Sequence record: OU343168.1
Direction: 5' to 3' (one strand)
DNA length: 64,000 bases
Under the pieces are notes generated by a model. It ran no database searches. It was not told the DNA's origin and saw only the letters and a program-made list of their open reading frames with translations. Below are positions 2,706 through 60,532 of this stretch, one piece after another; positions within the stretch are counted from its first letter, which is position 1; each line of letters begins with the position of its first letter. A program made the translations under genes and the position numbers.

Positions 2706-2816
2706 AAGGAAATCGATGGATGACGAAGCATTTGAAGGAGGTAGACATCCTATGCAGTGAGTCTTGTAACTTCTTTTGACTTACTCCCATTGGATCACCT
2801 TTAAGAGGATAAAGCA

Positions 2817-3446
2817 ATGGCTTCAAACCTTCCAATCCAAACGATCTTCCTCGACAAGTTCGTCGAGTTCAACAAAGACCGCTACAAAGACCAGGCGGAA
2901 ATGCTCGCCCTCTTTGACGGCCTGACCCTCGCGGACATCACGATCTCCGATATCACCGCCGACGGCACCAACCCCGAGCTGCAAAGCGCCACGGTCACCT
3001 CTGTGAGCCGCAACTTCAAGGGTGTCGAACAAAAATGGCTCCCGGCGAACATCAACACTCCGTTCGCCTTCGTGGTGGTGAACAAAGGCGCTCCCCTGAC
3101 CGGCGAAGACCAACTGGCCGAGCAGACCACCCCGGGTGCCTACGTTTACCTGGTCGGTGAAGGCGAAGAAGCGGTTCAACGCGTGGGCCTGGTGCTGGCT
3201 TCCACCACCACCACTGAAACCCAAGCCGCCGACGCCCTGGCGCTGTTCAAGGCCAACTTCGAATACGTCCTGGACGACGCCGATGTCGATACTGCCACCG
3301 CCAAGGTGCTCAAGGTAACCACCAACCCGTTCACCCGCGGCGAGCTCGTGTACGAAATTGGTAAGGCTCCGATCATCGAGATTCCGGAAACCGACTACGG
3401 TCGTCTGGAATTCAAAGAAATCGTTCAACCCGAACCCCAACCGTAA
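2817..3446 (+). CDS. Putative virion structural protein, paralogue of 15134-15727
   Basis: 209 aa, strongly C-ending codons; N-terminus FLDKFVEFNKDRY resembles FLERFIAFNKERY of the 15134-15727 product. Confidence 0.6.
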   Translation: MASNLPIQTIFLDKFVEFNKDRYKDQAEMLALFDGLTLADITISDITADGTNPELQSATVTSVSRNFKGVEQKWLPANINTPFAFVVVNKGAPLTGEDQLAEQTTPGAYVYLVGEGEEAVQRVGLVLASTTTTETQAADALALFKANFEYVLDDADVDTATAKVLKVTTNPFTRGELVYEIGKAPIIEIPETDYGRLEFKEIVQPEPQP

Positions 3447-7295: not shown

Positions 7296-8222
7296 TCAAA
7301 AGAAGCGGTAGATATCACGGTAGCGTCCTGCTTGGTAGTAATCTCCTGATCCAATGGTGGAGGAATTAACACCCCCTACCAGGTAAATCCCACTGTCATC
7401 CGTGAGCATCTCAAAGGCATACCGTTTTGTTACCGTGGTCATTTGCTTGTACCAACGGTCTTTCAGTATGTCGTAAATATGGAACACGATGTAACCGTTT
7501 TCAACACCACAGAGAATCAGAAACTGTTTCCACGAAGTCCCCCCAGTCCAACTACTGGCAATAGGTGCTTCTGTTACCGTTCTCCAGGTGTTGGTAACGG
7601 GATCGTATTCCCTGACCAATCTTGACGTACCCGCGGGGTCGTTCCATCCCCCGAATACATAGATCTTTCCATTGAACTGTCCGATGTAATGCCCATTGAG
7701 CGCCATCGGCATATCCGCTTTACGGGTCCAGACGTTGGTGGTGGTGTCATACTGGTGGTTGAGGGCTGTGGGTTTATTGGTACTCCCCATGTAACCCCCC
7801 ATGCAGAAGATCGTCTTATCATCCAGGGTAATACACCGACCTTGTCCTCGGGCTCCATCCGGGAGGTTATTCAAGTTCGTTGAAGACCCTGTTGAAGGAT
7901 TCAATTTCCACACGTGACTCACATAGTTCCCATTATTACCGGTAATACCCCAGAAGGAACTGTTGCAGTAACACCCGCCACTCCAGGCCCATACGGAGAT
8001 ATTCCCGGTAGTGGCCCACGTACGGGTGGTAAAGTCATAACGGGTATACGTCTGTTGTTGACCCCCACCGGCAAACTGACCTCCGAAGATATGAATCTTC
8101 CCTCCACCGATACCCGCACTGAAGTTAGCAATACCGTTGAAAGGAACTTGAGTCACCCATTCCATTCGTCCCAGAATGTAGGGGTTATCATCAGAAAGGG
8201 TAAATAGTTGACTCTCTAACAT
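7296..8222 (-). CDS. Kelch-repeat beta-propeller protein, probably tail associated
   Basis: Repeated GG...Y..W units (IHIFGG, IFCMGG, IYVFGG, IYLVGG; YDPVTNTW); last gene of the tail-fibre cluster. Confidence 0.85.
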   Translation of the reverse strand: MLESQLFTLSDDNPYILGRMEWVTQVPFNGIANFSAGIGGGKIHIFGGQFAGGGQQQTYTRYDFTTRTWATTGNISVWAWSGGCYCNSSFWGITGNNGNYVSHVWKLNPSTGSSTNLNNLPDGARGQGRCITLDDKTIFCMGGYMGSTNKPTALNHQYDTTTNVWTRKADMPMALNGHYIGQFNGKIYVFGGWNDPAGTSRLVREYDPVTNTWRTVTEAPIASSWTGGTSWKQFLILCGVENGYIVFHIYDILKDRWYKQMTTVTKRYAFEMLTDDSGIYLVGGVNSSTIGSGDYYQAGRYRDIYRFF

Positions 8223-10517: not shown

Positions 10518-13500
10518 TTAAGGAACAACAGCACCCAACGCACCAATCCACTTGGTTCCATTCCAAGTAAAGACGTAGACCAGTTCAGATCCACTGACGG
10601 ATGGGGGAGTTCCGTTATGCCACACCAAGGGTGTTGCATCCTTACCGGAGAAGGTCACAACACCCGCTCCGCCGGTGACATTAACCGTCAGGACCATCCC
10701 CCGTACCGGGGCTTTAGGTCCATCAGCAATCACCATTTGCTTACCCCCCGCCGCGGTGTTATTGATCTGGATGTACTGATCCACCAACGGATTGATTTCC
10801 CCACTGGTCGTAAAGACCTTAATCGGCAAATCATAGCGGTCAAAGGTGAGCTCCAGTTCCTTCCATTCAGGAATATCCGTGCCGGCACGGAAGACCCGAA
10901 CGTACTGTTTACCATCCTTGGCTTGGAGGTCTTCAATACCCTTCGGAAACTCAATGGCTTTCCATTCGGTACCGTCACCTTCTGCATTGACAGCCTGGGC
11001 GTAATACGTCCCCGCAACCGCATTCGGCACGGGACCAATAGGGAGGGGTACCCAACGGTTACCCAACCGAACAACTCGGCCTTCAGACTCCATGGGGGAA
11101 TTGACATCACCTGCCACCAAACGTCCCCACAGGACCCAACCCCGATCAACGGTCTTGTAGAAGACGTTGAAGGTCTCAGAGACTGCCCAGTCACCGACTC
11201 GACCACTGAAGGCATCCGATGGTGCGTCTACACCCGGCGGCAACGTAAGCCACCGGCTGCCTTGCTCGCCTTGAATACCGGGTTTCCCTTGAGGGCCGGG
11301 AGGACCATCACCCCCGGTCTTACCGGTTTGACCGCGCCATTCACCGGTTTCACGCCAGGCGTTAGTCGACGTACTCCAGATGGCTAGGGTGTTGGACTCC
11401 GCCAGGTAATACGCATCCCCCGCAACCCCCGCAGGAATAGCCGCTTGTAAAGCCGCCAGGTTCGCATAATCCCCTTTAATGGGCACCGCAGGGCCTTCGG
11501 GGCCTTGTTCACCCCGTTCCCCGTTCTTACCCGGTTCACCCCGGAAGTCAAACCCAGGACTCCACTCGCGCTCATCATTCACGAAATACGTTAAATGATT
11601 CTCCAGAACGAGGATAGCGTCACCTTGCTTATAATCACCTGCCGCAGGCAGTTCTGCCAAGGTGGGCACCACATCCACCATGTTCAACCCAGCACCGGGA
11701 GCGCCATCACTCCCTGGCATGGACACCGGACCCACGTTATCCCAACGAGTTCCGGTATTCACCCAGAGGTCTTTATTCAGGTCAACGTAGGCTTTACCTT
11801 GAGTTTCCTCGTTAATCGGAGGAGGATCGGCATCCGCAGGTGTCAGGACCTTAATGATGTCCAAGGACTTACCATTCAGGCCATCCTTACCGTTCTCACC
11901 ATCCTTCCCTTTAAAGACACCCAGATTCGCCCACGCATTCGAAATGAATCCATAGATCGCGTTTTCATCACGAACCGCATAGACCCATTGATCTTCAGGA
12001 TCCGCAGGAAGGTCCGCTACTGTGTCAACCACACCCCGAAGAACAATGTTGGTGCCGTTACGTCCATGGAGGCTGGCTAGGAACTCCTCTTCACTCCCAG
12101 TATTCCCTTTGGAAATCCAGAGTTCATACGTGGACTGACCATCGATACCGTCTTTCCCTTTAAAGGGACCCAGGTCCAACCAGGTCGAACTCGCTGCACT
12201 CCATACGTACAACCGAAGGGTGTCTCGTGTCACATACCCGTCTTGGTTAGCCGGAGGGTTGGGTAGGTTGTCCAGATCAGCACGGGTCCCTACAGTCCCC
12301 AAGACATTCAGGTTCTCACCAGGTTCGCCTTTCATGGCCGCCCAGTAATCATCTTCCGTCTTACCTTGGTTCTCGGGTTTATTCAACCAGACCTGAACAC
12401 TGTTCAGACCACCCGGTCCTACATCACCCTTATCCCCTTTAAACCCCCCCAGCTTCCGCCACGCGCTGTTCAGGTAGATGTACAGGGTATTCTCATCCTG
12501 AACCGAATAAACATCCTGTTCTACACCGGGGTTGGGGAGGTCATCTATGGTCGCTACGGTGTCTTTAACGATCAAATTACGACCGTCAACACCGTTTCTA
12601 CCATCTTCTCCCTTGAATTTACCCAGAATTACCCAGTTATTCTCAATCCACATACGGACTGTATTGTCCGCGCGAACCGACCAGGCATCCTGTTCAGCCG
12701 CGTTACTCGGGAGTTCACTGGCCAGGTCTACCGCCCCTTTCACCACGATACTCTTACCGTCGGTACCGTCCTTACCGTCCTTGCCCTTATACTGACCGAC
12801 ATCAACCCAATCCGTACGGTCTGCAATGTAGATCCACAGGTGGCCCGTATCCAACGTCACCCAGCCATGTTGATCAACCGGGTCTTTAGCATTCAGCGCA
12901 TTACGGTCAGCCACCGTTCCCTGTACCTGAAGGTTAGCCCCGCGTTCACCCCGAATGGCTTCCTGCCACTCTGTAATGGTTTTGTTCTCGTTACCGGGAA
13001 TCTTCTTCCAGGTTTCGAACGCATCATCTCCCTGAGCACCTTTATCTCCTCGTTGGGAAGCCAGGAATTCCTGAAGGGTCTTTTCTTCATTCCCAGGAAT
13101 CTCTTTCCACAGCTCGAAGGTACTCTTGCCGTCAGGACCTCGAATGTTCAAACTTTCCCAGACAAACTCACCTGCTGTTTTACCCGGAACCAGAACATGG
13201 ATATCATTCCGCCACAGGTAGGCATCTCCGGGTTTATTCCCTTCAGGCAGTGGGAGATCGAGGTTGTCAGGCCAAACGCCCAACAGGTTAATCCCCCGTT
13301 CCCCTTGCAAGGAACCCGAAGACGCCCATTCGTTACCGTTCCATACCCGTAGGGCAAAGTTAACGAAGTACGCGGTACCGATCGGAAGCTCTTGGGTATC
13401 AATAGCTTCCAGTTCAGCTTCCGAATTGAGTTTACCTTTAAGAACAACCCCTTGAGTTGAGAGGGATTCTAGACTCTCCTTCAACCACCGGGTACGCGCA

Positions 13501-45876: not shown

Positions 45877-47319
45877 ATGAAACCGACTAACATTACCCTC
45901 TTAGACCCCCGGACGATTGTTCCGGGTGTCTTTAAACCTATTACGTCCACGGACTCGTTTGAAGGGATGACTCAGAACCTCAATGATGATGGTCTCTTCT
46001 CCCTTGACATCTTCGGTAAACTGGGTAGTAAACAACGTGATAACACGGAAGCGTATATCGACGTTAAACTTCCCATCTTCAATCCCACTTACCTAAAAGC
46101 CCTTATACAGATCAAAAGTCTGTATCATTCAATTTTGAAAGGATCGGAATACGCGGTATGGGATCCCGAACTGAAGGATTTCATAAAATCGAACATCCTG
46201 GAAGGGGAAAAGGGTTTCGCCTTCTTCCTGAAACATTTTGATGAAACCGTCTTCTCCCTGACCCCCTCTCATAAACGCAAACAACGGGTGGAACTGGCGA
46301 ACCAATTCCGTAACACGGCGTTAACGGATAAGGTCCTGGTCATCCCCGCGGGTCTCAGGGATATCCAATTCAATCCAGATGGTTCCCACACCGAACCTGA
46401 AATCACTGAATTCTACCGCGCCTTAATGTTCCGGGTGAGGGTGATCCTCGGGAATAAGGAAGATGCCCTGAACCCCCTTTACGATACCGTTAGGTGGGGG
46501 GTACAGAATGCTTTCTTGGAATTGGATAATTACCTCTTTGGTTTACTCCAAGGGAAAGGGGGTGTTCTCCAGCGCCGTATGTCCACCCGGGGGGTTCACA
46601 ACAGCACCCGGAACGTCATTACCGCCCGTAAAGTCTCCAGGACACGTTTAGACTTCGACGACGGTGTAGGTCCTAACTCTGCGGACATGGGACTCTACCA
46701 AGCCCTACTGAACTTCCCTTATGTCTGCATCAATGCGTTAACCAACGGCTACCTTTCCAACATCTTCACCCCCAGCTCTCAAACCGCTAAGCTGGTGAAT
46801 ACCAAGACCCTGGAATACGAATACGCTGAAGTCTCCCCTGAGGTGGTAGAGAAATGGACCACCGCCACCGGGTTAATGAAACTCTTCAACGGGTTTGCCG
46901 ATCCCTCCTTACGGAGTAAACCCATTGTCATTGAGTGGAAATACTTAGCCCTCATTTATGATGATGGGACTGATGTGTGTGTTCTCCATGACATCAACGA
47001 TCTCCCTCAAGGGAAAGACCGTAAATGGGTGAAACCTATCACCTACATGGAACTCTTCTACTTGAGTTGCCACAGTGTCATCGAAGAACAGATTACGGGA
47101 CAAACCCGGTATCCCATTACGGGGATTGGCTCTATCTTCCCGGCTAAGGTGAACCTACGTACCACCACCAATGCGAGTCAGAGGGTGATCCGTAATCCGA
47201 TTGATTGGAGTGTACGGGAAACCTGTAAACGGTTCCCTAAACGCGAAGCGCATCCCGATTACTTCGATGCCATGTCCGTAGACCCCTCTAGAGAAGCTTT
47301 GCTCGACAGTGACCATGAT
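45877..47319 (+). CDS. rpoC: Virion RNA polymerase beta' subunit fragment (phiKZ gp180-like), exon 1
   Basis: DGLFSLDIFG, VLVIPAGLRD, LQGKGG..R...RGV motifs; ends ...LLDSDHD at the 5' splice site. Confidence 0.9.
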
Positions 47320-49091
47320 TAGATAGTGATGCATGATATAAACTCACTATACAACTCCTATTGTATGCGGAAGTGTTCGCATTCGACCATAAGGAGTTGT
47401 AAAGATGCTAACGTGTTTTGGAAAGAAATACGTGTTGTCTACAACCAACACGGTTTACAATGTCACCGATAAGACAGATGTTCCAGTCCATCGGATGACA
47501 GACGGGAATACGTTCTTCATCGCACGGGGCGATGAAAACGAACTGGTTAAGATCAAACTGGGGTTAATGATCCTCCATGGAGAAGGAAAGTTCCATCTTC
47601 CTCTCTCTGAATGGGAACAGGTGAAAGTAGGTTTTCTGGATGACGATACAGGAAACTTTGCAGCGGATAACCTTTACTTGGTCTATCCTGAAGAGGGCAT
47701 CCCTTACCCTGAACTCTCTGGGTACTACTACATCCCTGGGTTTGAACTCAACGCAATCAACCGAGACGGTGTGGTATACCGAACAGTTAGAAAGAATCTT
47801 TACCCACCGTATCTGGGTGGTAACACCGTTCCTAACAGTTTCTACCCCTTTGTTCGACTGGATGTGGTCAGTGGGGATGAACGCAAGTATGTCCACCGGC
47901 TACTGGCGGAGACCTTCGGTAAGCCGCCTAAGGGCTACCCCAAGCTACTGGTCGACCATAATGACGGTAACAAGATGAACTTCAAGCTCTTTAACTTGAT
48001 TTGGGTTACCGCTAAGGACAACTCCTTCAAAGCGTACAACAATCAAGAAGCGAGAGCGGACAATAATCCCCTGGAGGTTTTTGACAGGGAATTAGGTCAA
48101 GTCTTTAAGTACGTCAGTCAAAATGAGTTTGCTAGAACCATGGAGGTGGATTCTTGGTGCATTGGTCTGGTGCTCAAACGTCCTCGCTCGGTGTACAAGA
48201 ACAGGTACGTTCTTCGTCGGAAGGGAGATACACGTGACTTCCAAGAGATCTGGGACTATAAGCCCCCTGTGGGTAAGAAGATCCTTGCCCGGAATGTCTT
48301 CACCGGTGAAATCACGGTGTATAATTCATTGGCGGAGGCCTCTAGAGCAACACAGGTAGGGACAACAGGCATCCTGACGTCCCTGAGTAACACCAACCCG
48401 AGATCCGCCTTTAAAGACCTTCAATTCAAGCGGGAGTCTGACGAGACCCCTTGGCCCGATTTGAATGAATACGAACTGGAATGCATCCGGCGCAAGATGC
48501 ACCCTGCTACAGCTGTGTATGAAATGTTTGATTCGGTAACCCAGGAGACGTCGATTGTGTATGGCGTTGATGCAGTTACCCGAATCACCGGAGCCAATCC
48601 CCGTACCGTTATCGTTTGCGCACGAGAAGGTAAGTTGCTCCATTCCCGTTATCGTTTCAAGAAACTTACACGTTAACGAGTTTATATCCATCACTTAGTC
48701 CGGCTAGGCACGAAAGTCCTAGACCGTATTCCTCTGAATTGCTGGGAGTTCACAAAAGTCTGTTGGCTACAACGTAACTGGAAACAGTAAGCGTGAATGC
48801 GACCGAAAGGTAGAAAGAACAACAGACCTGACCTACGCTAACCAATAACGCTAAGGGTCGTAAACAAGGGACAATCAGCCGCTAAGACGCTACCGGGTAT
48901 TAGACCCTATGCGTAAAGTTCAACGACTAAGGGAGTTATGACCCTGTACACCTACCAAGGAAGGGGGTGGAAGTGGAGGAGACCTAAGGGGGAATAGACC
49001 TATTCCCTACGGTCAAGATATAGTCTGGCCCTGTTTAATAAACAGGCAGGCACCTGAGTGTGCCGGGTCCTAGTACGGACTGACCACCGCG
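47320..49091 (+). mobile_element. Group I intron (1772 nt) with HNH gene in the P1 loop
   Basis: P GAATTGCTGGGA 48736, Q ACAATCAGCC 48871, R GTTCAACGACTA 48918, S AAGATATAGTCT 49015 (P7 GACUA/UAGUC); P1 GAU|UA pairs with UAGUC 48696-48700 giving a U.G pair; ends in G. Confidence 0.93.
47405..48676 (+). CDS. Intron-encoded NUMOD4/HNH homing endonuclease
   Basis: YVHRLLAETF...VDHNDGNKMN....NLIWVTAKDN; repeated C-terminal NUMOD1-like DNA-binding modules. Confidence 0.92.
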   Translation: MLTCFGKKYVLSTTNTVYNVTDKTDVPVHRMTDGNTFFIARGDENELVKIKLGLMILHGEGKFHLPLSEWEQVKVGFLDDDTGNFAADNLYLVYPEEGIPYPELSGYYYIPGFELNAINRDGVVYRTVRKNLYPPYLGGNTVPNSFYPFVRLDVVSGDERKYVHRLLAETFGKPPKGYPKLLVDHNDGNKMNFKLFNLIWVTAKDNSFKAYNNQEARADNNPLEVFDRELGQVFKYVSQNEFARTMEVDSWCIGLVLKRPRSVYKNRYVLRRKGDTRDFQEIWDYKPPVGKKILARNVFTGEITVYNSLAEASRATQVGTTGILTSLSNTNPRSAFKDLQFKRESDETPWPDLNEYELECIRRKMHPATAVYEMFDSVTQETSIVYGVDAVTRITGANPRTVIVCAREGKLLHSRYRFKKLTR

Positions 49092-49274
49092 GGCGATCAA
49101 TTGTCGAGCCATTCTGTTGTAGCGGAAGACAGCAAACAACAGGCCTACGAACTCTTTGGGAAACGGGAGTATTACATCAGTGGTACAGGTCGGTTTTTGT
49201 ATGATCCGATCAATGAACCGATTCTCTTTATGTTTAAAGCAGCGACGAGCGGCTTAGAGGATATTGAGGTATGA
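49092..49274 (+). CDS. rpoC: RNAP beta' fragment exon 2 (60 aa; not in the ORF track)
   Basis: GGC GAT CAA... (GDQLSSHSVV...EDIEV*) completes DHD|GD; its stop overlaps the next ATG (ATGA); spliced product 541 aa. Confidence 0.9.
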   Translation, partial: GDQLSSHSVVAEDSKQQAYELFGKREYYISGTGRFLYDPINEPILFMFKAATSGLEDIEV

Positions 49275-52200
49275 GCAATCCAATTACGTATTCCGAGTTC
49301 TTTAAGCACTTTGTGCTGCGTAAGAAACAAGACGTTGTAAACCCTAAAGTCCTGGGTATTGGTGAAGTGATCCTTCCTAAGGGGAGTTTGCTGCACTTCG
49401 TACCGAAGACGGTTAATGAAAAGGGACCGGGTAGTAGTGAAGCGTTTATCAGTAACTTCCCTAAAGAGGTCTTTATTGAGTTTGTAAGGGACGGGTATAA
49501 GCCGGTGATGGGGCATGGGCGGGTAGTCGCCTATGACTACCCTAAGGCGGTTAAGGCGTACCGGGCGAGTCACTACATGTACAGCTGGGTGCGTGAGATC
49601 AGCACGGTGTACAACAAAGAGAACGTGCTAGTCGTTAAGAACTACGGGATGATTCCTCAGGGGTTCGTTTACCGTCCGAGTATTTTCGTGAATTATGAAA
49701 AATACTACAACATGATGCACCTGCTCATTGAGAACATCAATGCGGAAGCCGAGAAAGGGGTGCGTCGGCAGTATATGCGGATTGACCTGCCGTTGAACCT
49801 ACCGTCCCTGGTTGAGCTTGAGAAAGACTACGGACGGTTTATTGATGGGTTTAAGGACGGGCATCCTGTCCTGATGCGCAACATGCTGGAGAGTACGAAG
49901 GCTGAGAACTGCTATTGGCTGTTGGACCTACTGGGGTTCCTGTTTGGCCAGTATTCGTTCAGTTTGTTCGGTAAACTCACCGACCAGGCGTATAAGGATT
50001 TGCATATCCTCTTTACGTCACAAAGTAAAGTCATTGTGGTACAACTGGGGCTGTTGAAGGGTTGGTTAGATGAGACAAATCCTAAAGACGAGAAAACCTA
50101 CCCCTCTGCTCGGAAAGAGTTTGAAAGTCTGAAGACATTGACCCGCCATAATGCGGTTAAACGTTTCTATTTGGCTTTGATGAATCTTTCTCGTGGAGGC
50201 GTTCCTGAGAATGTACTCATTAAAGAGGAAACGAAAAATGTCATCCCAATTGCCGGAGAGAAAGGTACCGTTGACCAAGTGGCTGCGGGAACGTCACGAG
50301 AAGAAGAAGAAGAAACATCCAATCTTCCAGAAACCCGAGACCATACTGGCTCGGGCACGGTTCCCCGTGCTGATCGTCCTGCTGGTTCTATCCTTGATGT
50401 TTTCAGCCGAAGTGAAGGACCTGGCGAGGCACATGACGAAGAGCAAGACACAGCGGGAGAACGAGGTGCTGATTCAAATCTTGAAGAGTGGACATCGCCG
50501 GTAGATGATAAACTGCTGGAGGTGGAGAAAGTCCAAACCGAGATCAATACCAACAAGAATGTGTTTAAGACGCCTGAGAGTGGTGTAAAGCGGGCGTTGG
50601 AGGAGCGGGCTAAGGAAGGTACGCTGACGGTGGCTGAACATGATTTCTTCATGCGTAAAGCGACCCGTTATCAGCACATTGAAATGGAGAACGGTCAAAC
50701 GTTCGAAGAGTTCATTCAGATCAAACCCGAAGAGGTTAAAGACCTGGGTGGAGAGATTGAAGGTGAGTTTCTCCCCGTACTGGATGAGAGCATGTTGCGG
50801 AGTCGTGCTAAATCCCTCAAGATCGAGTATCCTCAGAAGTTTTTACACCGGGATATTGGTCGAATGGTGTTGGGTCTTCAGAACGCTGGCTTTGCGATGA
50901 ACGACTACCGGCGTGAGAAGGTCGTCAGCGTAGAAGGCAGTTACGAGGTCCACAGCATTCAGTTGCACGAAGTCAATGGTGATCAGGTCACTGTACATAC
51001 TCGGTTGCCCACGGTGCTGAAAGACGGTACGTACGTCATTGATGGTGTTAAGCAACACATGCAACTGCAACGTCGGGAGAAACCCTTCCGGAAGATCAGT
51101 CCTCGGGAAGTGGTACTGTCGAGCTACTACGACCGTAAGCTCATGGTGAGTCGTAGTCCGAAGATGGTGGATAACCTCTCTACGTTCATGGTGAAGCAAA
51201 TCTCCCTCCAGAGTAAGCGGAAAGGCTATACGGTCACTAAAGGCAGTACCTGGGATCGTTCCCTTAAAGCCCCCCGGATTTACAGCATTCTGGCTCGTCA
51301 GTACAAGTACATTACTGTCGACGGGTTGGTATTGGACTTCCGGTTGAAGGATCTCCTGGAACTCCACCCTGAGTTCAAAGCCTATACCCGCCCTGATCGG
51401 TTCTTGATTGGGGTAAAAGACGGATTACCTTTGATCATTGATGATTACGGTAACCTGTACAAAGGGGAAGAGGAGCTCGGTACCGTTGAAGACTTGCTCG
51501 GTATTGATGTTCGTAAAGCGCCTTTGGAACACGTGGTGATTAACATCAGCGGGTATTCGTTTCCGTTGGGAGTGGTCCTGTGCTTCTACTTCGGTATTGA
51601 TGAACTGTTGCGGGTGATTAAAGCCACGACACGTTCGGTACCCGTAGGGACTCGCCCTAAATTGACGGAGGATGAATACGCGATTCAGTTCAATGACGAA
51701 TACCTGATCTTTAACCGTCGGGAGAAGCTCACCACGTTGATCTTCGGTGGAATGCCGAAGTTGAACAACATCAGTAACTTCAGTCGGAGTGATTTGAATA
51801 ATAACAGTATCTGGAGTGCATTGATGGGAGACCCGCGGGTTCGTCCATCTCAGTTCCAGGAAATGAAGAACCTCTTCGATCTCTTTATCGATCCCATTAC
51901 GAAAGACCTCTTGAAAGAGATGAAGCTGTCTGAAGACTTCCATTACTTGCTGATTGATGCGGCTAAGGCATTGGAAACGGATTACAGTCGACACGAGGTG
52001 GAGATTGAAGAGCAACGCATTGTAGGGTATGAACGCTTCGCGGGTCATCTCTACACGGAATTTGTAAAGTCCATTCGTCAATACCGGAATAAAGGGAAAG
52101 GACGTAAACACAAACTGGACTTTAATCCGGATGCGGTTATTATTGCCATTGGTACTGACCGGTCTACGAACTTGGTGGAAGAAGTGAATCCGGTTCACCA

Positions 52201-52471
52201 AGTGAAGGACCAAGAGGAAGTGACGTTTGGGGGTACGGGTGGTCGTAGTGAAATCACCATGGTCAAACGCGCACGGACTCAGCTGGAGAGTTACAAAGGG
52301 GTCATCAGTGAAGCCAACAAGGACAGTGGTAAAGTGGGGTATGTGACCTACACCACCTCTGATCCGGGTATCGCTGATTTCCGAGGCAATGTTGATCCCA
52401 AGAACAAACGTACTCCTACCGGTGACGGTTCGGTAACTATGAACCTGATGTACGGTGGAACGCATGACGAT
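49271..52471 (+). CDS. rpoB: Virion RNA polymerase beta subunit (phiKZ gp178-like), exon 1
   Basis: EEVNPVHQ...EEVTFGGTGG, EANKDSGKVG beta motifs; ends ...GGTHDD at the splice site. Confidence 0.9.
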
Positions 52472-52886
52472 TGAGCTGTTGTGAAAACAATAGATCACTC
52501 AGTCCAACCAGGGAGTAATCCCTTGTTGCCATTACCTTTAATTGCGGGAACCTACTGAGAGCCTTATCTACCAAACCCGAGCAGGAAACCAACGGGTGGC
52601 CAACCATAACGGGTTGGGGACGGTAATAACGATAAGGATTGGGGAACCCTACGCAGCGAAGCACCTACGTATTGTCGAGAGGACAAGATAGGGTGAACGT
52701 TCAACGACTACGGATGAAATTTCCGGTAGAGGTGTCAGGATGATACTTCCAAAAGTAAGGTTGCCCTGTATGCTTGAGGTGTGAATAACACTGAGTACAG
52801 GGATGAAATATAGTCTCGTCATCTAAGGGAAAACCTTAGAGCGTGGTGCTACGCGCACCGGCGGATAGGATATCCGTGAAGAAACG
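52472..52886 (+). ncRNA. ORF-less group I intron (415 nt)
   Basis: P AATTGCGGGAA 52540, Q ACGCAGCGAAG about 52651, R GTTCAACGACTA 52699, S GAAATATAGTCT 52805; P1 GAU|UGAG pairs with CUCAGUC; ends ...AAACG. Confidence 0.93.
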
Positions 52887-54005
52887 GTCAAACGAGCAGT
52901 ATTCACATCGACTCAGGCCTCTCAAGCAGTGATGGCTAAGAACTACGAGATCGTTACCCTGAGAACGGGTTACGAGAATGTACTGGCTCACCGGACCTCT
53001 GACCTCTACAGCAAAGTAGCCGCTGAAGATGGTAAGGTCACTAAAGTGGAGAACGATCGCTTACTCGTCGAATACAAGGACGGAACAACGGACTCGTATC
53101 CCTTGGGGTTGGTGATTGGGGAAGCCAGTGGGGAATATCATCCCCACAGCCGTACCACAGATCTGAAGGTCGGAGATACCTTCCGTAAGGGAGATGTCAT
53201 CGGTTGGGATGAAAACTGGTTCGGTCGAGATCCCTTCTGCCCAGGGCAAGTCGGGGTTAAGATGGGTAAAATGTGCCAGATCGTTATGGTGGAAGATCAG
53301 GATGTGTACGAGGACTCTATTGCAATTTCGAAAGAATTGGCGATGGAAGCACGTACCCCATTCATTAAACCCAGTCGGTTTGCCGAGGACGTGTCAAACA
53401 ACCTGGTAATGCGGGTTAAGGTAGGAGATTACGTCGAACAGGACACGATTTTATGTGATATCGAAGAGCCTCACTTGGTGGAGGGCGAGGAGCTTCCTGA
53501 GCTCGAAGCAGACATCAACAAACTCGGTATCAAACAGATCCGTTCGAAGCATCATGGAAAGATCGTACACATCGATGTTCGGTACAACTCTCCCTTAGAC
53601 AAGATGTCTGACTCGTTCCGTTCGTTCATTGTTCAGAAGGATAAGGAAACGAAACGGAAAGGGTTGGTGGAAGGAACCGGTGTCGAGAACAATGCCATTT
53701 CCACGATGTTCAATCTTAATCGTCCCATGTTAGGTCCAGGTAAGGCGTTCATTACGTTCTACATCGAGTCGTTAGACCCGAGTACCAATGCGGATAAGTA
53801 TGTCATTGGGAACCAGATGAAAGCCACTGTGGGTCGTATCATGGAAAGACCGCTTAAGACCGCCAGTGGGATTGTCATTGATGTGAAGTCGAGCTTTAAA
53901 GGGATGTTTAACCGAATGGTGCTCAGTTTGAGGAACAAGCTGGTTGCTAACGAGTATGGTTACCAAATCACTCGCCAGGCCATTAAACTCTACAGAGGTA
54001 AATAA
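52887..54005 (+). CDS. rpoB: Virion RNAP beta subunit, exon 2
   Basis: VKRAVFTSTQASQAV joins HDD to mirror bacterial HDDANRALMGSNMQRQAV; YEDSIAIS and ADKYVIGNQMKAT motifs; spliced product 1439 aa. Confidence 0.9.
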   Translation, partial: VKRAVFTSTQASQAVMAKNYEIVTLRTGYENVLAHRTSDLYSKVAAEDGKVTKVENDRLLVEYKDGTTDSYPLGLVIGEASGEYHPHSRTTDLKVGDTFRKGDVIGWDENWFGRDPFCPGQVGVKMGKMCQIVMVEDQDVYEDSIAISKELAMEARTPFIKPSRFAEDVSNNLVMRVKVGDYVEQDTILCDIEEPHLVEGEELPELEADINKLGIKQIRSKHHGKIVHIDVRYNSPLDKMSDSFRSFIVQKDKETKRKGLVEGTGVENNAISTMFNLNRPMLGPGKAFITFYIESLDPSTNADKYVIGNQMKATVGRIMERPLKTASGIVIDVKSSFKGMFNRMVLSLRNKLVANEYGYQITRQAIKLYRGK

Positions 54006-59155: not shown

Positions 59156-59596
59156 ATGTCGATCAATAAAGAATACGGCGAATGGATGGAAAAGGGTGTT
59201 AAGGGTCTGGTAGACGCGCACGACTACAACAAGGCCACCAACCACATCACGTTCGATTCGGAGAAGGTGGAACTGCCTAAGGGTGTTACCCAAGACAGCA
59301 TTCTCCAGCATGTCAATTTCTTCAATGATATCAGCGCGCAGGTTGAAACAGCCACCTCCCAGATCGCCCGGAGTCAATTCGAAAACAACAAGGAACTGAC
59401 CACCGTCGACGGTACCCTGAACCTCGGGGGGTTGAACATCAATTCCCAGCATCACCTGAAACAGAAAGTGGGTGAAGATTATCTGTGGGGGCAAAGCACC
59501 ACCGCAGTCGATTACACGCATACCGAAGAACAAGCCGTTTGGTTGGAAACCCAACGTACGGCCAGCCAGGAACAGGCTGCTAAGCTGTTCGAGTAA
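59156..59596 (+). CDS. Early hypothetical protein
   Basis: 146-aa ORF with GAGG SD behind the promoter motif. Confidence 0.8.
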   Translation: MSINKEYGEWMEKGVKGLVDAHDYNKATNHITFDSEKVELPKGVTQDSILQHVNFFNDISAQVETATSQIARSQFENNKELTTVDGTLNLGGLNINSQHHLKQKVGEDYLWGQSTTAVDYTHTEEQAVWLETQRTASQEQAAKLFE

Positions 59597-59866
59597 ACCG
59601 GTAGGGGATTGAGCACCCCGGTGTACGACAAGCGGAACTTGGACTGTACCAACTGACCATCACCGCCTCAGGACCGGTGTGTAAGTTCTCGTTGGTTGAG
59701 TTCAGCACGATTAAGGATCCATGTACACGTAACCCGGTGCTCGAGTTCGCCCTCGACGCCAATGGCCGGTCGGTCTTACGGATGAGTTTGTCCGTAAGAC
59801 CGACCACACCGATGGACATATCCTGTGTATCTCGCGGGACTACAGTGACCCGGAGCTTAAACTTAA

Positions 59867-60106
59867 ATGAGTATCAAAGCCCTGTTGTTGGCGACCCTCA
59901 CGTTAGCCGCCAATGAACCCCGCGTTGTCACCACGACCAACGTCCTTGACAGTGCGGACGAATGTGTACCAGCGATGCGACAAATCGCTGAGCACCACAA
60001 TCTACAAAACCACATCTTCTCGCAGGGCAAGGAATACCTCAAAGCTCGTCAATCCACCGCTCAAGGTAACATTACCTTGAGCATCAGCTGTAAGGAGCTT
60101 AAGTAA
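59867..60106 (+). CDS. Small protein with signal-peptide-like N-terminus
   Basis: MSIKALLLATLTLAA, GGAG SD, two Cys, TAATG coupling to the next gene. Confidence 0.6.
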   Translation: MSIKALLLATLTLAANEPRVVTTTNVLDSADECVPAMRQIAEHHNLQNHIFSQGKEYLKARQSTAQGNITLSISCKELK

Positions 60107-60480
60107 TGCAATACACCCAAGAGAGTTTGGCTGAGACTCCAATGGAGCAGCGTATCGAAGCGATGCTGTTCGGGCTCCAAACACTGACCTTCCAACTCAA
60201 CGCGTCGTTGGTCGAGTTTTACATCGGCGAGATCAAGCTGAAGGCACAACCGGGCGCCTTGGTGGCCGACATCGTTGTTGAACGCGACGGCGAACTGCTG
60301 GTAAATTACCGCGCCCGTTCCGAAGGCACCACCATTTCGATACCGAAGTCCAGCGTTGGTGAAAAAGATCTCATCGAGTATCTCGAGAAGTTCTTGGTTA
60401 TGGTAACCTACGCCATCCACCGATCGTTTATCAAGGAACACTGCGATAACCGCACTACCCTCATCCCTCCCCAAGAGTAA
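60106..60480 (+). CDS. Hypothetical protein
   Basis: 124-aa ORF with AAGGAG SD. Confidence 0.7.
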   Translation: MQYTQESLAETPMEQRIEAMLFGLQTLTFQLNASLVEFYIGEIKLKAQPGALVADIVVERDGELLVNYRARSEGTTISIPKSSVGEKDLIEYLEKFLVMVTYAIHRSFIKEHCDNRTTLIPPQE

Positions 60481-60532
60481 TCTTACCTAGGGGTAGGCAA
60501 CTACCCCTTCCCTATTCCAAGGACTGTTCGAG

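Follow-up and report, generated by a model that had tools for sequence, protein, structure and literature searches.

A putative self-splicing group I intron without a reading frame in the virion RNA polymerase beta gene of phage EL and its relatives

The beta gene and its intronless allele

Phage EL, a Pseudomonas jumbo phage of the genus Elvirus (placed in Chimalliviridae by the GXNNE2 record), carries a homolog of phiKZ gp178, which is the beta subunit of the RNA polymerase packaged into virions (vRNAP), and RefSeq presents this homolog as 2 coding sequences, gp186 and gp187. Are these 2 genes, or is a single gene interrupted by an intron? We addressed this question in a 64,000-nt stretch of sequence record OU343168.1 (the window; all coordinates refer to it unless stated otherwise, and the beta exons and intron elements lie on its + strand), of which 1.6 kb around the putative intron were 100% identical to Pseudomonas phage vB_PaeM_phiRU and 99.8% identical to EL. 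The RefSeq labels read "RNA polymerase beta subunit" for each of gp184, gp186 (1067 aa), and gp187 and "HNH endonuclease" for gp185, and the intron is not annotated; in Elvirus records other than the intronless ones, either 2 genes are annotated here or none. A note in the Moabite record states that EL protein 186 was detected in virions by mass spectrometry.

The first-pass annotation of the window had proposed that 2 apparent beta ORFs of 1067 and 358 aa are fused by the splicing of a 415-nt group I intron, and both frames were borne out by the ORF list (49271-52474 and 52929-54005) and by translation. Exon 1 (gp186; 49271..52471) comprises 1067 codons, ends in ...GGTHDD, and is colinear with residues 1-1067 of the GXNNE2 protein. 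Exon 2 (52887..54005) comprises 372 codons and a stop, starts with VKRAVFTSTQASQAV, and was placed by translation, by correspondence to GXNNE2 residues 1068-1439, and by alignment to Thermus beta. The RefSeq start of gp187, ATG 52932, lies 15 codons downstream of the exon 2 start, and on reading the sequence we identified no Shine-Dalgarno-like sequence upstream of it.

A natural intronless allele fixes the intron boundaries independently. In the sister phages GXNNE2 and GXNNA8, exactly these 415 bases are missing, and an uninterrupted protein of 1439 aa is encoded; the 2 records are of identical length and come from one laboratory, so the allele effectively represents one independent isolate. 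Alignment of EL with GXNNE2 DNA removes precisely 52472-52886, with boundaries GAT/T...ACG/GTC (slashes mark splice boundaries here and below), and this exact excision establishes the proposed length and the HDD/ junction. The joined protein reads ...GGTHDD/VKRAVFTSTQASQAV, and the GXNNE2 gene is identical to it residue for residue at the junction.

We searched for the identity of the encoded protein. Pfam returned no RNA polymerase domain for either beta half alone, and only a phmmer search of PDB sequences with the full-length protein of the intronless allele identified it as beta, by a match to Thermus beta chains (E 3e-8; query 1053-1219 to chain 540-695). Across the junction, the joined protein can be aligned with residues 540-695 of Thermus thermophilus beta (HDDANRALMGSNMQTQAV; E 3e-8), and, by the same phmmer match, it carries the beta motif HDDxxRAxxxSxxxxQAV together with the domain that follows it. 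The 1439-aa CDS of GXNNE2 and the Thermus alignment agree with the suggestion of one beta subunit colinear with its bacterial counterpart, and the reading of EL gp186 and gp187 as one gene that would encode one 1439-aa subunit is supported. The predicted nucleotide junction after splicing is CATGACGAT/GTCAAACGA, and the predicted tryptic junction peptide of the joined beta is TPTGDGSVTMNLMYGGTHDDVK.

Predicted fold and splice sites

Judged by its sequence, 52472..52886 is a group I intron of 415 nt; it is ORF-less, and its first 3 bases, UGA, form an in-frame stop. The Rfam group I model (RF00028) matched the stretch 52437-52841 over the full model positions 1-253 with 40.5 bits, at an E-value of 8e-9 in a local search and 6.8e-7 over the whole 64-kb window and both strands. 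This score falls below the curated gathering score of 50 bits, a shortfall due mostly to long inserts and a P1 that was mis-assigned; with default settings, Rfam gave only the other group I intron of the window, at 48673-49045, and the beta intron surfaced with E-value thresholds.

The named core elements, short P1, GAAA loop, and P9 hairpins of the first-pass annotation could all be located, with the R and S elements and hairpins readable beside the full-length RF00028 match. P1 (52469..52504; sequence reading and MFE fold) pairs GAU/UGAG (52469-75) with the guide sequence CUCAGUC (52498-504) over 7 bp, in which only 3 exon bases take part. The final base of exon 1, U, pairs with G in P1 (U52471.G52502 at the 5' splice site), and the final base of the intron is G (G52886, set by the intronless allele). 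The P1 extension, a 7-bp stem (52476-82/52487-93) with a GAAA loop, corresponds to the loop that holds the HNH ORF in the PhiPA3, Totoro, and upstream EL introns. It is followed by the P2 hairpin (52505..52528) with a GUAA loop, which was found in the MFE fold and shows compensatory changes across 6 related introns.

The 5' half of the core (52533..52710) was placed by the Rfam alignment, with RNAalifold pairs for P4, P5, P6, and P7, and comprises the 5' strand of P3 (52534-39), P4 (52543-48 with 52647-55), a branched P5 extension (52549-52646), P6 (52656-52700), and a canonical R element, GUUCAACGACUA, with the 5' strand of P7 (52699-52710). Between P7 and the 3' strand of P3, the MFE fold contains 2 extra P7.1/P7.2-like hairpins (52711..52750), which are an insert relative to the Rfam model and in which the P7.1 pairs covary. 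The Rfam alignment then places the 3' strand of P3 (52754-61) and the P8 hairpin (52764-52803), which covaries, ahead of a canonical S element, AAAUAUAGUCU, with the 3' strand of P7 (52806-16). The P9 region (52817..52886; sequence reading and MFE fold) includes a P9 hairpin (52823-39), a second hairpin (52862-76), and a possible third (52845-59), and the intron tail, UGAAGAAACG, ends in the terminal G at 52886; the 3' region as a whole resembles that of the PhiPA3 and Totoro introns. Extra P7.1/P7.2-like hairpins are a feature of subgroup IA introns, and in its modelled fold the beta intron looks like a member of that subgroup.

The MFE fold was more stable than all 100 shuffles (z = -4.5) and recovered P1, P2, the P5 extension, P7.1/7.2, P8, and P9. 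RNAalifold, run on 6 introns (EL beta, PhiPA3, 201phi2-1, Totoro, Yaphecito, and upstream EL), recovered P2, P4, P5, P6, P7, P7.1, P8, and a hairpin of the P9 region. In this small covariation sample, with uncertain peripheral alignment, 26 of the 46 predicted pairs still pair after changes on both sides (in P2, P5, P6, P7.1, and P8), and P7 is invariant. For P10, the pairing of the guide sequence with exon 2, the standard register is unpaired and a weak 3-bp alternative joins 52493-95 with 52887-89; many group I introns have only a weak P10 or can do without it.

Occurrence in Elvirus, the upstream intron, and mobility

The intron was identified in 7 of the 9 Elvirus records, the other 2 being GXNNE2 and GXNNA8. 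Over its 415 nt, 1 substitution was found in HHBS8_1 and 4 in IR-QUMS, against about 2% in the flanking DNA, and conservation of the intron within Elvirus is at least that of the coding flanks. In HHBS8_1, T52524G turns the sole C.U mismatch of P2 into C-G. A tree of 6 Elvirus loci over 14 kb, for which there was no usable DNA outgroup, had GXNNE2 as the most divergent lineage with the longest branch, and local tree topologies differ, which indicates mosaic recombination. In the nearest non-Elvirus relatives (73-82% protein identity), beta is uninterrupted. Given these uninterrupted relatives and the divergence of GXNNE2, a single gain in the ancestor of the non-GXNN isolates is the most parsimonious history, and precise loss in the GXNN lineage is a conceivable alternative. 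In most Elvirus isolates the intron was probably passed on by vertical descent, and the GXNN lineage lacks it.

Two further features of these records were noted. Window positions ~59400-60500, a region of small hypothetical genes corresponding to EL gp194-197, differ from EL, IR-QUMS, MIZ-Pa99, and GXNNE2 by 120-220 substitutions per 500 nt and many indels (about 10 per 500 nt elsewhere) and are nearly identical to HHBS8_1; the segment looks like a swapped mosaic module. In MIZ-Pa99, whose taxonomy line reads Straboviridae, inconsistent with Elvirus, the stretch 7573-7980 of its extract (equivalent to window 52472-52886) misses several single T bases, including in a P1 strand, and the exon 1 CDS as annotated runs on for 15 nt; the missing bases look like a sequencing or assembly error rather than biology.

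A second group I intron of 1772 nt (47320-49091) splits the gene for the N-terminal part of vRNAP beta-prime inside the catalytic DxDGD motif. Its P1 pairs GAU/UAG with CUUAGUC, the P1 loop contains the HNH gene gp185 (47405-48676), and the core (48673-49045) scores 50.6 bits in Rfam. The beta-prime locus (45877-49274) has as exon 1 gp184, which ends in ...SDHD, and as exon 2 a stretch of 60 codons (49092-49274) that starts with GDQLSSH and is unannotated in EL; the uninterrupted homolog of Erwinia phage Joad reads SDHDGDALS, and the predicted spliced junction is GACCATGAT/GGCGATCAA. We obtained no match for gp184 by phmmer against PDB sequences, and its identity as beta-prime comes from the DxDGD motif and homolog annotations. 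Each of the 2 EL introns comes directly after a GAU codon and has an in-frame stop as its first codon. The start codon of the beta gene and the stop codon of beta-prime exon 2 share bases in the ATGA at 49271-49274, an arrangement that suggests possible translational coupling of the 2 vRNAP subunits, only after the upstream intron has been spliced.

The proposal that the beta intron encodes no endonuclease held up: the longest + strand ORF inside 52472-52886 has 49 aa, and tblastn with 3 HNH proteins found no HNH remnant there. Where related introns carry the ORF, in the P1 loop, EL has a GAAA-capped stem that is paired throughout and shows no trace of coding sequence. A close ORF-bearing relative was found neither by blastn against the phage collection nor by an IMG/VR pattern scan with blastn, which yielded only Elvirus copies and short matches to the core of unrelated introns. 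The first-pass annotation had offered a lost ORF or mobilisation in trans as alternatives. Loss of an ORF, whether clean or ancient, and a history without any ORF appear about equally likely. Lacking an endonuclease, the intron would be unable to home on its own, and it may be read as a passenger, in the ORF-less phase of the homing cycle.

One idea, which we regard as rather doubtful, is that the intron is kept as protection. By splitting the HDD site, it would make the EL gene immune to same-site HNH endonucleases of rival P. aeruginosa jumbo phages, the known enzyme being of the PhiPA3 gp210 type, which cripples phiKZ by nicking there (PMC11620839). If so, the intron would be a defence against interference competition rather than a parasite in decay. 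In a related scenario, it may still spread with the help of a trans-acting nuclease.

That the beta intron is still mobile, moved in trans by an endonuclease encoded elsewhere, seems unlikely to us. One candidate is the HNH protein gp185, in the intron 3.4 kb upstream, which could act by cleavage near the empty beta site or by long co-conversion from the target of its own intron. The HNH gene sits in the adjacent gene, its product is a distant relative (25-28% identity) of the HNH proteins encoded in the beta introns of PhiPA3 and Totoro, and silent differences at exon 2 positions +3 and +6 (GTC AAA versus GTG AAG) track intron presence in every Elvirus record aligned. However, these silent changes are not diagnostic, as intronless relatives use both AAA and AAG, and exon divergence, sought as a signature of co-conversion, was not higher near the insertion site. 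GXNNE2 has the upstream intron and gp185 but no beta intron, so the 2 introns are not co-inherited; further, the 2 empty target sites share little beyond GAT/G, and no other HNH relative was identified in the 64-kb window. Free-standing endonucleases mobilise ORF-less introns in cyanophage psbA; trans mobilisation of the EL beta intron is possible but unsupported.

Predicted splicing, and same-site introns in other giant phages

The beta gene of EL vRNAP very probably contains a self-splicing group I intron whose removal joins the exons for one 1439-aa protein, catalysis and the single virion polypeptide being predicted from the sequence. The primary transcript would fold such that CUCAGUC pairs with the last 3 exon bases and the first 4 intron bases; free guanosine would attack after U52471, the released exon end would attack after the terminal G52886, and CATGACGAT would be joined to GTCAAACGA in an mRNA for a beta subunit of 1439 aa and ~160 kDa. 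Because UGA occupies intron positions 1-3, translation of unspliced RNA would be truncated to a 1067-aa fragment without the conserved beta motif and all that lies downstream. The family assignment suggests a phage nucleus in which transcription takes place apart from translation, so that the intron would fold without help from ribosomes.

It is very improbable that the gene is truly split, with the 415 nt a dead intron relic or spacer and gp186 and gp187 2 beta polypeptides that assemble. In jumbo phages, the RNA polymerase genes are frequently divided into separate subunits (PMC7598289), distinct ORFs in EL were raised as a possibility in a 2010 paper (PMC2919709), RefSeq annotates 2 CDSs, and the Rfam score is under the gathering cut-off. 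In contrast, all core elements are preserved, together with the U.G pair and the terminal G, and the intron is conserved at least as well as the coding flanks, with one change that restores a pair. A gp187 that started at 52932, where no ribosome-binding site is visible, would lose VKRAVFTSTQASQAV, the segment aligned to the conserved bacterial beta motif. The sister phage encodes one continuous protein here, as do the 281 of 295 phage records that are uninterrupted over this beta region, and among 80 IMG/VR loci EL itself is the sole one split at this site. A chance resemblance in a non-coding spacer, which the sub-threshold Rfam score might suggest, is hardly credible against a window-wide E of 6.8e-7 and an insertion site common to verified introns, and it is refuted for practical purposes by the exact excision and uninterrupted CDS in GXNNE2.

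Read as an intron-containing gene, the EL locus calls for an annotation fix and does not represent a new kind of element, as the kind of intron and its exact site are already known from related phages; novelty is lower because the site is a known intron hot-spot (PhiPA3, 201phi2-1). Our literature search found no paper on the EL intron or on a gp186/gp187 fusion. The correction concerns the reference annotation of a much-used model phage, in which gp186 and gp187 would become one gene and gp184 the N-terminal half of beta-prime, with its last 60 codons missing from the annotation, and the right subunit sequences are needed for proteomic, structural, and comparative work on jumbo-phage vRNAPs. 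With EL, the lineages that share this recurrent intron hot-spot, located at the fidelity Asp of beta, would number 4. Culturable Pseudomonas and Serratia phages offer sites that are empty, occupied with an ORF, and occupied without one, which opens the homing cycle to direct tests, and the natural pair of EL (intron present) and GXNNE2 (intron absent) allows a test of intron endonucleases as weapons between co-infecting phages.

Comparison with related phages backed the placement of the insertion point, which directly follows the 2 Asp residues of the conserved HDD motif (E. coli RpoB D675): the same codon boundary holds group I introns in PhiPA3, 201phi2-1, and Serratia Moabiteviruses, and where such an intron includes an HNH gene, the gene lies in the P1 loop. 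Exon 1 ends in GAT in all 5 intron-bearing sequences read (EL, PhiPA3, 201phi2-1, Totoro, and Yaphecito), and intronless alleles end in GAT (18) or GAC (26) at this position, as expected if the U.G pair is required. By gap-tolerant pairwise alignment, identity to the EL beta intron was 74% for PhiPA3/201phi2-1, 69% for Serratia, and 63% for the upstream EL intron; the closer likeness to same-site introns than to the upstream one weakly hints at shared ancestry by site.

The PhiPA3 group I intron, with its HNH nicking endonuclease gp210, lies directly after 2 conserved Asp residues, the second being RpoB D675 (PMC11620839), and gp210 nicks the empty site in phiKZ (Birkholz et al. 2024, PMC11620839). 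This intron of the vRNAP beta gene (gp211/209) resembles that of EL in its site and its P2 and P9 regions; exon 1 ends in NDD/, exon 2 starts with MKR, and P1 pairs GAU/UGU with ACAGUC. Unlike the EL intron, it encodes in its P1 loop an HNH nicking endonuclease of 330 aa, an enzyme that homes and interferes with phiKZ.

In 201phi2-1 (Thomas et al. 2008), the intron shares with EL the same gene, the HDD/ boundary, the ORF-less state, the architecture, and a guide sequence ending in AGUC. Its gp273/274 is a joined CDS in GenBank, described as "interrupted by a mobile ..." and "similar to phiKZ gp178, EL gp186 and EL gp187", and according to a statement in PMC2919709 that cites Thomas 2008, gp273/274 forms a single SDS-PAGE band. 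The 201phi2-1 intron has 336 nt, reads HDD/MKR at its junction, scores 87 bits in Rfam, and is ~74% identical to EL over the aligned core (gap-tolerant alignment), without the long P5 extension. It (12582-12917, minus strand of its extract) keeps the last ~45 nt of a PhiPA3-type HNH frame, TACAAAGATTTAATAGATACAGTCCCACTAGGTAGCGATACCTAG, a remnant that precedes and overlaps the guide sequence and reaches P2. This remnant resembles a deletion scar, and the 201phi2-1 copy looks as if it lost its ORF by deletion.

All 3 states of the homing cycle are found within the Serratia Moabiteviruses (site YDD/PKR), a parallel to the occupied and empty alleles in Elvirus: Totoro and Kodama have an intron with HNH, Yaphecito an ORF-less intron, and Moabite an empty site, and the Serratia introns are ~69% identical to that of EL. 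The Yaphecito intron (2778-3200 of its extract) has A instead of G before exon 2 (...GACUAGA/CCAAAG, with the frame set by Moabite/Totoro), which might reflect an error in the record, an atypical 3' splice site, or decay of the intron. Further, sequences of 58-80 nt that match the P6-P7 core of the EL beta intron at 75-87% identity were identified in PA7, fnug, OMKO1, Vibrio JA-1, and others (phiKZ-like, Aeromonas, Klebsiella/Raoultella, and Vibrio phages). Many of these matches fall where no feature is annotated, and they may mark further unannotated group I introns.

The introns of T4 td, nrdB, and nrdD and of the SPO1 DNA polymerase gene are self-splicing, belong to subgroup IA, and interrupt conserved motifs of essential genes. 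They have an in-frame stop at or near the intron start and extra helices after P7, as in EL. The likeness is one of general description, and the host genes differ: those of T4 and SPO1 serve nucleotide metabolism or encode a DNA polymerase, whereas that of EL encodes a subunit of a multisubunit RNA polymerase.
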